Part shown: one piece after another, positions 2,832-52,947 of the stretch | Position numbering within the stretch: the first letter of the stretch is position 1 | Layout: the number at the start of each line of letters is the position of its first letter | Assembly: GCA_025594325.1 (NCBI GenBank) | Contig: JANHCV010000005.1 | Span: 1,674,001-1,738,000 of the forward strand | DNA from: Blastocladiella emersonii ATCC 22665 | Lineage: Eukaryota > Fungi > Blastocladiomycota | Direction of reading: 5' to 3' | DNA: 64,000 nt | Translations under genes and position numbers: made by a program | Notes under the pieces: generated by a model | What the model was told of the DNA's origin: nothing | Databases searched by the model: none | What the model saw: only the letters and a program-made list of their open reading frames with translations

Positions 2832-3386
2832 GTGTGTGCATTGCACTTCCGTGCATATGTATCTCGGAGAGGTATGTTCGTCGTGCTAAGCACCTTCAGA
2901 TTCGGCGTAGAATTGCTCACATCGCGTTCCAACAGCGTCCTGACCTTTATAGCTTTGATGGGAGCCGTCACCTTCCCATCTTCACATTCACAAACCAAAT
3001 GGCAGCGCCTTCACTATCCCGAGGCGCTCGACGAGATCGATTCTGCCCTGATCGTCAAAGATGGCCGCGTGGTCGCAGAAGTGGTTGCCAAAGGCTATCA
3101 TCTCGTTCCTCGGCGATACTGGTTGTACGGCGAGCTCGGCAAGGGCAACCGCAAGACGGGTAAGAAGCCCGCACCATCGCTTCTCGCACTCACTGAGGCG
3201 AAGCGGGCCCAGCACGCACACTACGCGCGCAACGGAATGAACGTGGGCCGATTCCAGGTTCAACGCGTTCTTGCTGCGTACGAGCTGCTCCGCCGGCCCT
3301 CCTACAACGACCCGCTGGCCGAGCTTTCCATCAAGCTCAACAACATGGAAAATTCGCCTCCCACAAACGGCAACGGTGAGATGTAA
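2832..3386 (+). CDS. hypothetical protein, start uncertain
   Basis: 184-aa ORF whose C-terminal two-thirds looks protein-like (WQRLHYPEALDEIDSALIVKDGRVVAEVV). No recognisable family. Confidence 0.3.
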   Translation: MCALHFRAYVSRRGMFVVLSTFRFGVELLTSRSNSVLTFIALMGAVTFPSSHSQTKWQRLHYPEALDEIDSALIVKDGRVVAEVVAKGYHLVPRRYWLYGELGKGNRKTGKKPAPSLLALTEAKRAQHAHYARNGMNVGRFQVQRVLAAYELLRRPSYNDPLAELSIKLNNMENSPPTNGNGEM

Positions 3387-46176: not shown

Positions 46177-48452
46177 TCAATCAATCTCAATAATACGGTC
46201 GTCCACCTCCTCATCAAGCGAATGGGCGTTCGAAGCGGGGCCGCTCGGAACACGCGCGTCATTGGCTGATTTACGCGGCTCAACCGTATGCGGAGGCGCG
46301 ATAGGGACCTTGTACTGCGCGCCGCGGCTCGCGTACAGGGGAAACATGTAACAGCGCTGCATGGCGTCGCTCAACTGGGCGTGGAAGCTAGGTTTGAACG
46401 TTCTGCGTCCATCCACTTTCTCGTGCTTGGTCACTGCGTAAGCACCTTCGTGAAGGCAGTCGAGTAGGCAAAAAACGTAGGGCCGGCGAATCGCAGGGGA
46501 ATTGACCGCGCGTGGGGGCCATATGCACGATACTCGGGAGCAATTTGATCGAGGGAGTCAAAAGGTTTTCCATCCTGCGAGTCATGCCGGGGGAAGAGGC
46601 GCGTTTTCATAACCGTGCTGAGATCTAGGACAGGAGTGTGCGCACGCGACGCGTCAGTGGGTGGGAGAACGAACAGATGGTGCAGGAGCAGGACGCAAAA
46701 AAAGATGGGTTGCTCAAGGTCAGGCTTTGCGTCGTCGAAGACAATCTCCACAACCCGCTCGCCGCGCGCATAAGCGTTGAACAGGCGTGCGATCATGACA
46801 CGGAGAAAAGCCGTCTGCTCCCAAGCTGATGGAAACGCCAAGCGTTCGAGGCCACGGAGAGTATCGCCGACGCCTTCCATATTGCGTTCGAGCGCAAGCA
46901 ACGCCGCATGCTGGTCAAAGCGACAGATCGCATAGCGCGGATGAAGCTTTGCGTGGTTGTGAGTGGTCGGGGCAAGCGGGCCAAAAATCAAGTCAGGAAA
47001 TTCTGGGGACACCCCGCACACAAGGGCAGGTGACATATCGCGCGAAACGGTGATCTTGACAACGCGCTGCTGTCTTTTGCATTCAATCGATTTGATCGCC
47101 GCGCGATACGGGAGTCGCAGTGTCTGCTCCTTGCCGCTCACCATAAATTTGATCAGACTGGAAGCGCGCTCTAATATCACACCCGCTGGTGCGCTTTGTT
47201 CGATTTGATGGACGCGCCCACAAAGATGCGCGTCAGTGAGCGTAAGGGTGATCGAAAGCTTGTTGCCCGACTCAATGGCGCCCACAATTGGCAGAGTCGG
47301 TTGCGAATCAAGGTCCCGTTTGGAGCACATCAAGCAGACGATGGCGTTAAGCGCGTTGGCGATGATGGTGAAAACGCTTGGTGGACGACGAAAGAAATTG
47401 CAAGGGCCGAAAGCCTCCGCTAGAGTCTCAACGTATTGACAAAGCCGGCGCTCGAGACCCTCGTACACATCGTAAACGTTGACCTGGAAGACGTCAGGCG
47501 GGGAGAAGGCAAACGGGGCGTAGAACGAAAGCGCACTGTTTGCGCCGACAAGAAGCATGGTCGGATTGACAACGAGGTCGTTACGTGCGCCAACGTAGTC
47601 GCCAGTCAAATCGCTTCCTTCCTTGGTAAAGAAGGTGCTGCTGACAAGAAGCGATCGGACTTCCCGCTCGAACTTGGCCCGCTGGTCGCCAGCCGGGAAG
47701 CGTTCGCCGTGAACGCTGCGTGCGGTATCGATAATCCGATCAAAAGCCGTTTGGGCGTGATCATCGTGATCCTGGCCAGCATGAACACGCGCAAAGTAAG
47801 CGCCACGCTCCTCGTTGAGCTTGTCGAGGGACCAGTCGCACGCAAGCCACGACTGCCAGCAGTGGCGAATGGCACGCAGAGTGTCGTCGTCGAGCACGCG
47901 CAACTGCGCGTCCGGGCGGTCCCAAGTCGCACTCAAGCATGCGCGCATTTCGGCGGCCCAGAAATCACGAGTTGTGGGTTCGAGGAAAGTGGAGTACGTA
48001 AGCTGGCCGATGTGGCGGACAAGCTTGGACTTTGCCAACGTCGGTTGGTTCGCAACAGCGTGTAAAACGAGGAGGTTGCGGGCGAGCACTTCGGGGTGCG
48101 CGTCGCTCAAAACGAAAGAGAGCGGGGATATCCACGCAGCTCTACAGATTCATGGTAGGTGCGTGCAACATCACGAAGATCGCCACACTGGAAAACGAGC
48201 GCATCAAGGCGCCTCCCCAAAGGCCGATGATGAAAAAAAGAGGTCGCGCGCATACGACCGACCATAAGGGTAGTAAGGGTCGACAGTAGTGTCGCTGAGT
48301 GCAAGCGTCGCGCACGTTAGCGACGGCGAGGTTGTCGAGTGAGCCACTGGCTCGATAGCAGGGCCGACCTTGGGGTCGGCGCTGCTTTCGGATTCAACAG
48401 CAGCCGGGCTGTCGCCGGTGCGATTGCGATAAGTCTTTTTCCTTTGCTTCAT
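46177..48452 (-). pseudogene. DUF4470-domain protein, copy 3 (frameshifted, internally deleted)
   Basis: MKQRKK start at 48452 and LVFQCGDLRDV...EVLARNLLVL. Frameshifts near 48235 (T run), 48125 and 46450. Confidence 0.75.
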
Positions 48453-48481: not shown

Positions 48482-48546
48482 GAGGGCGGCCCCAGGGGGG
48501 CGACAACGGCCATCCGCGTGCCATAAAGTCGAGTGGCTGCCACTCC
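48482..48546 (+). repeat. left TIR and subterminal motifs
   Basis: GAGGGCGGCCCCAGGGGGGCGACAAC vs right-end reverse complement CAGGGCCGCCCCAGGGGGGCGACAAC; CGCGTGCCATA (48515-48525) and CTGCCACTCC (48537-48546). Confidence 0.85.
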
Positions 48547-48656
48547 TTTCAACGCGTCCCCCACGCGTCTCGCTCGCGCGCGGCGGTCAGCTTACCCTCC
48601 CGTCGACAGCTCCTTCCGCTTCGCTCATCGTGCATGAACGACTCCCACTCTATGCA

Positions 48657-51600
48657 ATGAAATGGCCACTCCATGAACATGTGATGTCGGAGAACAAGTT
48701 CCGCGAACTTATGCTCGAATTCATGACCCCGACCGACATCACGCGCGTCATGACGTTCCGGCGACGCGTCGCCCGCGAGGAGGCGCAGATGTTCCGAGAG
48801 ATCCTGCGCCAGTCGACTACCGCGCGAATCGAGCACTGCCACCGCCGCGCCCTCGCCCTCGCTGGCCCGCAGGACCATCCAACTGCTTGGGATGCGGCGC
48901 GGGGCGCGGCGCTCGGCACGTTTGCGCGCGCCGAGTCGGACCTGGAGCGTAACCTCGCTAGCGCCATCCAGGAGGTGAACGCGCGGTACGAGCTGCACAT
49001 GCACAAGGCCGACTGGTACTGGGGGTACCGCGTGTGGGACGAGCCGACGCGCTACTGGCTCGCGTCCATGCAGGAGTACGAGACGGGTGTGGTCGAAAGT
49101 CGAGAGGGCGGTGGAACGTCTCCGCGCGACGGACGTTTGCACCTCGAGCCCCGACGTGCCGAGTTTTGTCCCGCTCATCTCCTACTCGGAGCTACCCTCG
49201 AGTCCATCGACTTCTTCTGCCGAGCTCGTCCAAGAGCTGGGCTCCGGCTCGGGCACAACGGCCGCACCCGCGCCGGCGTACGGTCTCCACGCGCCCGCCG
49301 ACCTCGCCGGCGCCACGCACGGCCTCGACGCGCCCGCCGACCTCGCCGGCGCCACGCACGGCCTCAACGCGCCCGTCCACCTGCCCGCTGCGGCTCCCGG
49401 GTTCCACACGCACGCCGCTCAACCTGCCGTCGCGGTCGGGTTCGGTGTCCCGCTCGCCCAACTCGGGCCTCTCGCCGCTGCCGCCGCCCATCAACTGGAT
49501 CCGTTCCTGTAAGCTCAAGCTCAACTTCGAGATCCGCATGGCTTCGCTGTCGTGCAAGCAGCAGCCGCTGTCGCGCTCGTTCTCGAACTTGACCTCCCAT
49601 CATTGTCCATTGCCCGCATGATTTCCTCCCTGTATATACTCAGATCTATTCACCGTCCAATGCTTCACTCCCTTGTTCGCCACGCTGCGCTCTTCGACGT
49701 GCGGCGGGTCCAAGGACGTGCAGTCGCTCGCCATTCTTGCCGTGCAGATCGAGGACAAGGAGGGCATCGAGCTCCTCATCCAGCTGGCCACGGCGCTGTC
49801 CAAGGACGGCGTGCTCCCCCGCAAGCAGTTTATGTTCCTACATATTCGCGACCAAGTCCGCGGCGTTCTCGGCATCACGACCACGTTTTACGATCCCGCG
49901 ACGATCGAGGAGTGGTGCTACTTCCACGCCGAGGGCGGCGGCCACAAGGCGTTCCGGTACCTGCGCGGGCCCGGAAAGGCCGTGCCCGCCGGCCTGACCA
50001 ACGGCGTCCGTCACAACGCACACGGCACCCCGCACCTCATCAACCTGTTCATCCCGGACACGCGCACAGTGCAGCGCAAGGCCAAGCAGGACCTGGACAA
50101 GAAGAACCCGATCGGGCTCCAGTACGGCCGCATCAAGGACGTGGTCAAGTACGTGACGGGGCAGAAGGCCAAGGGCAACATTGTGGAAGCGTGTGTCGCG
50201 TTCGACGGCACGGACAAGCCCGACGAGCCGCGTCACTATGAGGACAGCATCGTCCAAGGCGGCCCAGAGTTTGGTAACCTCGACATGACGTTCAAGCTTC
50301 TAGCGGAACCCAGTGCGGCTCGCTTCGTGCGTTTTTGTCGCTCGATACGCGCGCCCTGACGTCCCGATCCGCGTGTAGTCCACGACGAGCGCTTCAAGGA
50401 CGCGTCCGACCCCAAGTTCGCGCTCCCCGTTGAGCTGATCGACAAGCTCAAGGTCGACGAGCTCAACGACGCGTGCGATGCGGCCGAGCAGGCCGTGTCC
50501 GAGTTCCACGCCGCGCCAGCCGCAACAGCAGCAGCCGCGGTCGGGTCGGAGAGCGGCGGCGCGGCACCAGCACCGGCCACCGCCCTCCCCGGTTTCAACG
50601 AGAAGGACAAGCTTTGCAAGTGCGCGCAGCAGGTCATCGACACGCTGCGCTACCTCTGCGAGCGCGCGAACGTGTACTCGGAGGCGCTCGCTGAAAAAGA
50701 GGAGAGGAAGCGGAGCAAGCTCGAGAGCCCCGAGACCTCGGACGCCTCCAAGGAGAAGGCCAAGGTGGCCCTCGCCAAGCTGAGCGCCAAGCGCAGCCGT
50801 GTCCACATGTACCGCTCAACAGGTTTGTGGTCGGCGATCATGACCGCTTACATTTGCTGTGTCTAATTAGGAACATTTCCTGGCTCGAGCTCCACGCGCA
50901 GCAGCTCGAACAGCAGATGGCCATGGTCATGACTGAGCAGGTTCCGGTTCAGCGCCTGACCAAGGTTGCCCTTGATCTGCTGCAGCTCATCATCGAGGCG
51001 CGCGACGGTGCCCACGACGCGCTCGTGGCCGTCACCGCTGCGGCGACGAAAATTCTCGTCTTCACCGTGACCGACGCGCTCAACAACCTGCAGTTCGTGG
51101 TCGCTCGCCTTCTCGTCGCATCCGAGTCCGCCAGCATCATTCTACCCGTACTGCGGTACATCAACTACGAGCTCAAGAAAGCTGGTATCTCGGTGGCCGC
51201 CCAAGCGTACGTTCTCCTCGTCCCACATCAGCGGCGCTTGCTGACAGCGAGTTTGCTTGTATAGGAGCGACGGCTCGAACGCCAACTGCCTCATGGGTCG
51301 CGGACCTGGCGCGGCGTGCTACCCGCAGATGGTTCGTGACGCGCAAGCGCAGTGGAAGAACATGGAGGAAGATGCGCTGCGCGAGTGGTTCAACTGCAAC
51401 GTCGATTCGGCCATGTCGCTGCTCAACAACTCGAGCGACGTCAAGGCCAAGTGGAATGAGCACTACTTCACGACCTGGAAGAAGGACGTGCACATCAAGG
51501 CTATCATCGAGGTCCGCGACAAGCTGAGACGGAGCCCTTCCGCGACGGTCACACAGGCGGCGTTCACGAGCGTGCAGACGGTGCTGTGGATCGACGCGCG

Positions 51601-52624
51601 CCTGAAGCTCAACCCCAAGCACGACGTACGGCGAGTACCATGGGTTCCTGTCATTCGAGTCGGGCTCGACGGTCAGCTGCACGAGATCGTGACGGTGCAC
51701 GACCGCGACCACGCGTTCAAGCGCGCCGCGATCCACTTCAGCGAGAGCTCCATTGAGGGCAAGACGGACCACACGCTGATCGACAAGATCATCAAGCTGT
51801 TCCCCGAGGTGCTCGGCCCAAAGTGGAAGAAACGCGATCGACAAAACGTTCCCGAGACGCTAAGGCTGTTCTCAATGGAGTGCATCGACAAGGTGCGCGA
51901 GGCGGCCGGACCCAACAACGAAAAAGGTACTGGACTCTGCATCATCCTCAACACCTGCCGCAAGCTCCAGGACGCGATGAACAGCTCCAACCTCGGCATT
52001 GAGCAGCGGCACCAGCTCGTCGACGAGGCCGGCAGCATCTTCTACCTCGCGTTCCTCGAGAAGTGGTGTTTGGCCAATGGCGGGTCGCCGACCAAGTACG
52101 TGTCCGGCATCCCCGCCTGCACCATCACGGCCCTGTTCAGCATCATCGGCGCGTTCAAGGCCTTTGACGAGCGCTACGCTCGCGCCAACCCAGAGCCGAA
52201 CGCCAAGCCGTGGCGCCAGCGCTTCCTCACCACCGACATGGTCGAGGCGTACTTCTCGGGCTGCCGCAACGCGTGGGGCCAGGACGGGCGCGCCAAGTCC
52301 AACACGCTGCCGCGCATCGTGATCCTGCTCGCCATGAGCAAGGCCGACCACTCGGCCGAGCAGCTCGCGAAGCCGTTTGACGAGCGCGGCGGGTTCGTCG
52401 GGTCCTCGTCGCGGCACTCGATGATCGGCGGGTACAAGCGCAACACGGGCGTGTGGGGGACGATGCGCGGCGAGGGATGGGCACGCGGCACTCCGATCGC
52501 TCCCGCCGCCCCCGCCGACCGCCCGCGCAAGCGCCCAGCAGACGAAGTCGAGGGCGGCATCGAGTCGAGACCGAGCAACCGCGGCTTCCACCGCAACGGC
52601 ACTCATGTGGGTCCCCAGTCGTAG
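48657..52624 (+). CDS. P-element/THAP9-like DDE transposase (multi-exon; 5' exons uncertain)
   Basis: Exons 49643-50312, 50379-50808, 50871-51206 and 51265-52624 join in frame through canonical GT-AG introns. Motifs FRYLRG...IPDTRTV, VAFDGTD (D 50204), AGISVAAQASDGSN (D 51269), DRDHAFK (51701), DRQNVPETLRLFS, TTDMVEAYFSGCR (E 52244). Confidence 0.75.
49280..49378 (+). repeat. 39-bp tandem repeat inside the transposon
   Basis: About 2.5 copies of ACGGCCTCGACGCGCCCGCCGACCTCGCCGGCGCCACGC. Confidence 0.8.
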
Positions 52625-52857
52625 GCACAGTCGGCGAGATCATGCCGGGCGCAGCTTCGCGCCGCGCGCCGAGTCCAACGGGTCACGGGCCCGCGAGGGA
52701 AGTCAGAGATCGGGCAGTTGCAGCAAGAGAGAACATTTTTGTAATGCATAGTTATCATGTTTATTGCGATCCACGGGCTTGCCGAGGTCGAAGAGAGAGA
52801 GAAAAGCGGCCGAGGCGATCTGGCGGGTGGCGCAAGCGGAGGCCTGAGAGGCGGATT

Positions 52858-52947
52858 GGAGTGGCAGTCTATGGCACGCGTCGGCTTCCCTGTGTCGATC
52901 ATCGCTTCCACAGCGCGCGCGGTTGTCGCCCCCCTGGGGCGGCCCTG
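52858..52947 (-). repeat. right TIR and subterminal motifs
   Basis: GGAGTGGCAG (52858-52867), TATGGCACGCG (52870-52880) and the terminal repeat at 52919-52947. Confidence 0.85.

Follow-up and report, generated by a model that had tools for sequence, protein, structure and literature searches.

The window, the whole stretch of DNA analysed here, comprises 64,000 nucleotides of contig JANHCV010000005.1 (positions 1,674,001 to 1,738,000, forward strand) from the genome assembly of Blastocladiella emersonii ATCC 22665 (GCA_025594325.1). At window positions 48493–52936 it carries a mobile element of 4,444 bp, with short terminal inverted repeats (TIRs), subterminal motifs near both ends, a perfect target site duplication (TSD) of 9 bp and, on the plus strand, an intron-containing gene for a DDE (aspartate, aspartate, glutamate) transposase. 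The element is genuine, a cut-and-paste DNA transposon that has moved recently in B. emersonii, a water mould-like fungus. Quite probably it is a low-copy, recently active transposon with a five-exon gene, whose DDE transposase of ∼1,150 amino acids (aa) belongs, as a very distant member, to the P-element/THAP9 superfamily.

Element borders and target site duplication

The endpoints were determined by aligning the ends of genomic copies and from contig break points in DNA runs. Four B. emersonii copies were compared, the one in the window and those at three further loci of the same assembly (L001–L003). Homology among them starts at CAGGGGGG and ends at CCCCCCTG, with the element itself running from CAGGGGGGCGACAAC to GTTGTCGCCCCCCTG, and outside these points the sequence differs from locus to locus. 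Contigs from the DNA runs (four runs of one sample) break exactly at 48493 and 52936 and then enter other flanks, one of which is the flank of L001; summed depth within the element is ∼3–6 times that of its flanks.

The TIRs are 18 bp long with one mismatch, the first 15 bp being perfect, and begin CAGGGGGGCGACAAC. The left TIR (CAGGGGGGCGACAACGGC) occupies 48493–48510 on the plus strand and the right TIR (reverse complement CAGGGGGGCGACAACCGC) 52919–52936 on the minus strand. They are flanked by identical 9-bp copies of GGGCGGCCC, at 48484–48492 and 52937–52945. Each of the three full copies has its own perfect 9-bp TSD: GGGCGGCCC in the window, AGCGCGGCG at L002 and GGCCCTGCT at L001.

An earlier note on this DNA had described an atypical architecture, with borders at 48482–52947, 29-bp TIRs and a short TSD of 3 bp (CAA). 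Copy comparison and the contig breaks overturn all three, and the atypical TIRs and TSD are artefacts of the misplaced borders. The window TSD GGGCGGCCC is itself a palindrome, and because the true TIR abuts it, the two together give the appearance of a 28–29-bp TIR followed by a spurious 3-bp TSD. A repeat finder likewise reports a 28-nt inverted repeat at 48483–48510 and 52919–52946, a 25-mer of which occurs in the window at these two places only, against an expectation of 0.

The same note had correctly recognized extra motifs close to the TIRs. On the left (48515–48546, plus strand) these are CGCGTGCCATA at 48515–48525 and CTGCCACTCC at 48537–48546; exact inverted copies of CTGCCACTCC and CGCGTGCCATA lie on the right at 52858–52880 (minus strand). 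The spacing is asymmetric, the motifs lying 23–54 bp from the left end and 57–79 bp from the right end. They are candidate transposase-binding sites.

Genomic copies and mobility

A word-index search found three near-identical hypothetical proteins in B. emersonii ATCC 22665, P0001 (827 aa), P0008 (1,150 aa) and P0009 (636 aa), encoded at loci L001–L003. The three full copies of the element are 98.2–98.3% identical, and L003 is truncated. Pairwise, copies differ at 14–20 synonymous and 23–28 non-synonymous positions, giving ratios of non-synonymous to synonymous substitution rates (dN/dS) of 0.38–0.50, which indicates that the protein is under selection in the active lineage.

Compared with L001, 2 nt are missing from the window copy at 49094/49095, and this loss shifts the frame within the N-terminal exon; a contig of run X1 also carries the extra GA at this position. 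At the same site L002 and L003 have a 38-nt deletion. The other exonic indels measure 3, 12 and 39 nt, all multiples of three, and a 1-nt indel at 50812 lies inside an intron. Because of its frameshift the window copy cannot make the full-length protein. It is thus probably non-autonomous and would depend on an intact copy, for example that on JANHCV010000016, for mobilization in trans.

Contigs from the DNA runs also contain internal joints. Two of these (49680 to 51704 and 49680 to 51848) skip ∼2.0–2.2 kb of the transposase gene, and others (51924/51929 to 52013) replace 83–88 bp. They may stem from derivative copies at other genomic sites that have undergone internal deletion or rearrangement.

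Two side observations concern these data. Loose contig ends of run X4 at 52883 and 52946 read ATAACTTCGTATAGCATACATTATACGAAGTTAT, a loxP site, most likely the linker of a mate-pair library rather than biology. P0002, a 302-aa B. emersonii gene model annotated as ‘AAA ATPase midasin’, lies on the same 2.5-Mb contig as L003; its residues 4–63 are 98% identical to the insertion domain of the transposase (AIHFSESSIEGK...KRDRQNVPEALRLFSMECIDKVRE) and the remainder is unrelated. P0002 apparently contains a transposon fragment that was merged into a host gene model, or else exonized.

Gene structure

Three-frame translation reveals four long open segments in two frames, which three GT..AG introns join into a stop-free frame of 917 aa ending at 52624. 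This is the gene of four exons and short canonical introns that the earlier note had described, and as a splicing prediction it stands; the gene is, however, longer, with a further exon and a 199-nt intron upstream. Modelled on sister copy P0008, the full gene has five exons and ∼1,150 codons and starts ∼1 kb farther upstream than the four-exon version. All introns given here are predictions from sequence, and all gene features lie on the plus strand.

The N-terminal exon (48657, or alternatively 48741, to 49444) matches the N-terminus of P0008 and contains the 2-nt deletion at 49094/49095. It has no recognizable domain. Near its end, at 49277–49393, are three tandem repeats of 39 bp, encoding 13-aa units of the form HGL[D/N]AP[A/V][D/H]L[A/P]GAT; L001 and L003 have one unit fewer, so repeat number varies among transposon copies. 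Intron A (49445–49643, 199 nt, GT..AG) joins the flanking exons as in P0008 (...AVAVGF|DLFTVQ...).

Exon B (49644–50273) encodes a THAP9-like helix-turn-helix (HTH) or ‘PDTRTV’ region, then strand 1 of the predicted RNase H fold with the first catalytic motif, then strand 2. Intron 1 follows (50274–50378, 105 nt, GTAACC..TAG); an alternative donor at 50313 is also in frame and is the one used by the NCBI gene models. Exon C (50379–50808) encodes a low-complexity, helical stretch inserted between RNase H strands 2 and 3. Intron 2 (50809–50870, 62 nt, GTACCG..TTAG) is the one with the 1-nt indel relative to other copies. Its best-looking donor (AG|GTTTGT, giving an intron at 50823–50870) was rejected, since it breaks the frame in all copies; the in-frame donor AT|GTACCG at 50809 resembles that of intron 3 (GTACGT) and is the donor chosen in NCBI's models for the sister copies.

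Exon D (50871–51206) encodes the last part of the insert followed by strands 3 and 4 with helix 1 between them (KILVFTVTD...GISVAAQA), a predicted beta-beta-alpha-beta unit whose P0008 equivalent gives the Pfam PF21787 match described below. After intron 3 (51207–51264, 58 nt, GTACGT..ATAG) comes exon E (51265–52624), with the second catalytic motif, another helical insert, strand 5 bearing the D(2)H motif, an insertion domain with the motif W.KRDRQNV, the catalytic glutamate, a C-terminal tail and the stop codon.

Transposase motifs and architecture

Every P-type motif quoted in the earlier note is present. The first catalytic aspartate (D1) lies in VAFDGTD, with its codon at 50205–50207, and the second (D2) in GISVAAQA|SDGSN, which spans the intron 3 junction, with its codon at 51269–51271. 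D(2)H takes the form DRDH (51701–51712), the insertion-domain motif KRDRQNV...LFS follows, and the glutamate (E) has its codon at 52244–52246 within TTDMVEAYFS (core DMVEAYFS). In sister-copy numbering the putative catalytic residues are D407, D700 and E1025, together with the D(2)H motif. The complete D...D...D(2)H...E string is kept in most relatives, and low-confidence models predict beta-beta-alpha-beta before D2.

Two regions enlarge the predicted RNase H fold. Between strand 2 (IVQGGPEF) and strand 3 (KILVFTVTD) lie ∼220 extra residues, the helical low-complexity insert of exons C and D, and between strands 4 and 5 another ∼105, for which models predict five extra helices. The distant relatives at loci L005 and L006 carry inserts at both positions, so the two inserts are traits of the family.

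Distant relatives

An exhaustive HMMER search of 1.84 billion representative proteins with the 452 aa of exon E returned only seven proteins. Four of the seven (P0003–P0006) are distant relatives, with 26–34% identity; their sources are a single ENA metagenome contig and two contigs (31–36% G+C) of Logan run SRR7244338. A word-index search with P0001 and with the family profile found the B. emersonii copies and P0004 only, and a scan of JGI metagenomes with the pattern W[YK]xRD[RIK]QNV yielded no confirmed relative.

The relatives keep the motifs S(F)DGG, (E)DPSHVLKR, W(Y).RD.QNV, AWDS, FY and ST(N/D)xVExFFS...G.DGR, and share with the B. emersonii protein W.xRDxQNV, D(2)H, FY and (T/N)DxxExxFS...G.DGR. 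Their upstream open reading frames (ORFs) keep FPSRQT(V/L) and (L/F)DETDF, which hhalign matches, at low probability, to NLFIPDTRTVQRK and VAFDGTD of the B. emersonii protein.

L005 is a complete element of 3,350 bp with 17-bp TIRs beginning CAGGGGGTGCTC, and the L006 contig ends exactly at ...GGCACCCCCTG; the termini at both loci are CAGGGGGTGC. In all fetched loci CAGGGGG occurs at element ends only; this 7-nt terminus has been kept although protein identity is ∼27% and base composition differs widely. An intact TSD is lacking at L005 (ATTGCAACC versus ATTGTTGAA), and the 9-bp TSD is therefore shown for B. emersonii only. Subterminal repeats occur in both relatives, TCCTAYCATGGTAGGA in L005 (93–110, 3214–3231 and 3338–3353) and GGGAGACAC in L006 (∼3098–3190); they are unlike the B. 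emersonii motifs, whereas the CAGGGGG tip is the same.

P0003 (L004, on ENA metagenome contig GROS21-1 scaffold_22506) has NGG instead of DGG at D2, and acidic low-complexity sequence replaces part of its core; it may be a decayed or domesticated copy. Full-length MAFFT alignments with the fragmentary relatives (A4 and A6) were visibly misaligned and were excluded from the modelling.

Superfamily membership

The earlier note had assigned the element to the P superfamily by its motifs. Membership remains the best explanation of several convergent signals, whose combined support is weak to moderate, and no curated P family is matched at threshold.

When short windows of sequence are scanned, the Pfam family PF21787 (TNP-like_RNaseH_N; gathering cut-off 24.6 bits) gives sub-threshold scores of 17.4–20.5 bits in three family members, over the same profile positions, 64 to 132 or 137. 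It is the top or only match for L006:980–1279 (E-value 6.2e-4, 20.5 bits), L005:1528–1731 (4.1e-3) and P0008:640–730 (5.6e-3). PF21789 (cut-off 24 bits) matches at 13–15 bits, likewise sub-threshold, with an E-value of 0.022 on the E motif of P0005. In the ESM-Atlas, neighbours of the C-terminal 452 aa are clusters with PF21788/PF21789 (score 0.94, 191 shared features) and those of residues 225–720 are clusters with PF21787/PF12017 (0.90–0.91), so that the families come in the right order along the protein; unannotated Basidiomycota clusters are also among the neighbours.

Structure prediction, which the earlier note had proposed as a check, gave a divided answer. With an AlphaFold2 model of the C-terminal half (P0008:636–1110), Foldseek ranks the P transposase chains 6p5a_A and 6pe2_A first of 350,542 (E-value 0.037, probability 0.97), followed by RAG1. 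VIA-align places residues 210–385 of this low-confidence model, from DRDH to just before E, on residues 339–527 of the Drosophila P transposase DmTNP, whose insertion domain is delimited by D339 of D(2)H and E531 (PMC8230255). The distance from D(2)H to E is 181 aa, compared with 192 in DmTNP and 199 in human THAP9 (PMC8230255). The TSD also fits, since 9 bp lies within what is accepted for the superfamily (7–8 bp, and 9 bp in some lineages): the published range is 7–9 bp, and 9 bp has been reported for the P element of Drosophila buzzatii and for BuT5 (PMC3698922).

A number of results weigh against membership. None of the curated P families PF21787, PF21788, PF21789, PF12017 and PF12596 scores above its gathering cut-off on any exon piece or relative, and Pfam scans of whole exon pieces and whole relatives return nothing. 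The D1 half of PF21787 and PF12017 find no sequence match in scans of the D1 and HTH pieces, and the family profile has no match among PDB sequences. The model of the C-terminal half is poor, with a predicted local distance difference test (pLDDT) score of 41; a second model, of the L006 ORF, is also poor (pLDDT 46) and gives only noise in Foldseek. VIA Z scores are 6.5 for P transposase and 7.1 for RAG1, with similar values for unrelated helical proteins. Both D1–D2 (293 aa versus 73 in DmTNP) and D2–D(2)H (144 aa versus 36 in P) spacings are about four times those of P. As the earlier note had said, the C2CH zinc finger THAP is lacking: no Pfam THAP match was found, the first 225 residues contain only two cysteines, and the N-terminal exon has neither a Pfam match nor an Atlas match above 0.59.

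These results leave some room, in our view rather little, for the one serious rival, a lineage outside P proper. It would be a DDE superfamily of its own, still without a name, or a lineage branching deeply as sister to P, hAT and Transib, and would resemble P through a shared plan of an RNase H fold plus alpha-helical insertion domain. Such a reading would account for the sub-threshold Pfam scores, the deviant DDE spacings, the missing THAP domain, the equally good alignment of RAG1 insertion domains and the near absence of the family from databases. Against it, all the weak signals, though independent, point to P families in particular and follow the order expected along the protein, no hAT, Transib or MULE (Mutator-like element) family appears in any scan, and D(2)H followed by LKR and the DxxE..FS motif are P-like.

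A divergent hAT element is very improbable. In its favour, the terminal CAGGG, which also counts against P membership, agrees with the YARNG consensus of hAT elements, an S..E..FS motif close to the C-terminus is reminiscent of hAT, and an insertion domain is present. Against this, the TSD is 9 bp in three of three copies, not 8 bp, neither the hAT dimerization family (hATC) nor a hAT RNase H family is matched even at E-values up to 10, D(2)H (DRDH or DPSH) stands in place of C(2)H (CxxH), and no hAT families are among the Atlas neighbours. A MULE is less credible still: its 9–11-bp TSD class would suit the duplication, but no MULE, Transposase_mut or SWIM match was found, the TIRs are short, and neither the D(2)H motif nor so long an insertion domain ahead of E is a feature of MULEs. 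A Transib/RAG1-like element was rejected, since the TSD is 9 bp and not 5 bp, the termini are CAGGGGG and not of the CACxxTG type, and the similarity is that of a generic insertion-domain fold.

The element and its few relatives may form a clade of their own. We regard as evenly balanced the proposal that this would be a deep branch of the P superfamily, or a superfamily sister to it, not described before. Its marks would be termini that are always CAGGGGG, TSDs of 9 bp, a novel DNA-binding region at the N-terminus in place of the THAP finger, and two additional inserts that interrupt the RNase H fold besides the classical insertion domain. Such a clade would be so rare that Pfam and almost every protein database have missed it, and would remain active in a fungus of an early-diverging lineage.

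Proposed mechanism

We propose that the transposase would recognize both the conserved CAGGGGG termini and the subterminal motifs, with its unassigned N-terminal region and a THAP9-like HTH as the probable DNA-binding parts. Excision would be carried out by an RNase H-fold active site comprising D407, D700 and E1025 with D(2)H, and reinsertion would proceed by 9-bp staggered cuts of the target, here in GC-rich sites.

Insertion site and neighbouring gene

The left end of the element lies ∼17–25 bp upstream of a minus-strand ATG (48467–48465, MNPTTMKQRKK...), in the 5′ region of the neighbouring gene; the places concerned are this ATG and window positions 46431–48110. The insertion may affect expression of this neighbour. 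The three known target sites have 67–100% G+C, against ∼60% for the window. Insertion into 5′ regions and GC-rich sites recalls the target preferences of P elements, three sites being too few for testing.

Significance

Most known P/THAP9 transposases come from animals, and sampling in other groups is sparse. If the assignment is correct, a young, nearly intact lineage in a blastoclad widens the architectural range of the superfamily, adding transposases that have no THAP domain and ∼325 extra residues inside the RNase H fold, and elements whose 7-bp terminus is kept across base compositions. It would be a test case for end recognition without THAP and for a possible ancestral origin of the GTP-dependent insertion domain, and Blastocladiella, a model for optogenetics and zoospores, could gain a native transposon tool. 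For annotation, the ‘hypothetical proteins’ H9P43_009285, H9P43_010043 and H9P43_004598, and the fragment that starts the 302-aa ‘AAA ATPase midasin’ model, are transposon-derived.

Comparison with known systems

RAG1 and Transib combine an RNase H fold and an insertion domain of similar topology (VIA Z 6–7) with a 5-bp TSD and heptamer-like termini; the B. emersonii element gives no sequence or language-model signal for them.

P elements have been recorded in fungi, from Allomyces macrogynus, in the same phylum (Blastocladiomycota), and from Pucciniales (P-1_MLP and P-1_PSt), with entries in Repbase (PMC5751038, PMC3164196). The earlier suggestion of an undescribed P-related lineage in zoosporic fungi is thus upheld in part: judged by its sequence the lineage appears new as a family or variant, and not as the first P element of zoosporic fungi. 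The recorded elements are detected with PF12017 and PF12596 and, in Pucciniales, have 8-bp TSDs (PMC5751038, PMC3164196), whereas the B. emersonii lineage is undetectable with those Pfam models. The exhaustive HMMER search with the C-terminal 452 aa had no Allomyces or rust protein among its matches.

The D. buzzatii P element and the miniature inverted-repeat transposable element BuT5 (PMC3698922) share with the B. emersonii element a multi-exon transposase, 9-bp (8–9-bp) TSDs and non-autonomous derivatives. The D. buzzatii element differs in having a THAP domain, TIRs of 3 bp, readily detectable P similarity and an insect host, and no relationship between the two was detected.

The closest points of reference are DmTNP (PDB 6P5A and 6PE2) and human THAP9. 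The B. emersonii transposase differs from both in its absent THAP zinc finger, in the ∼220 and ∼105 extra residues of its RNase H fold, in its size (1,150 aa versus 751 for DmTNP and 903 for THAP9) and in a sequence similarity below all curated thresholds; the element ends in CAGGGGG and duplicates 9 bp, compared with CATGATG and 8 bp for Drosophila P. Shared with them, according to low-confidence models, is a DDE RNase H core interrupted by a helical insertion domain of ∼190 aa between D(2)H and E. Also in common are the region of RNase H strands 3 and 4 (PF21787, sub-threshold), an E motif of the DxxE..F(F)S type (PF21789, marginal), short TIRs accompanied by asymmetric subterminal motifs, a gene with introns and a TSD of the 7–9-bp class (PMC8230255, PMC3698922).

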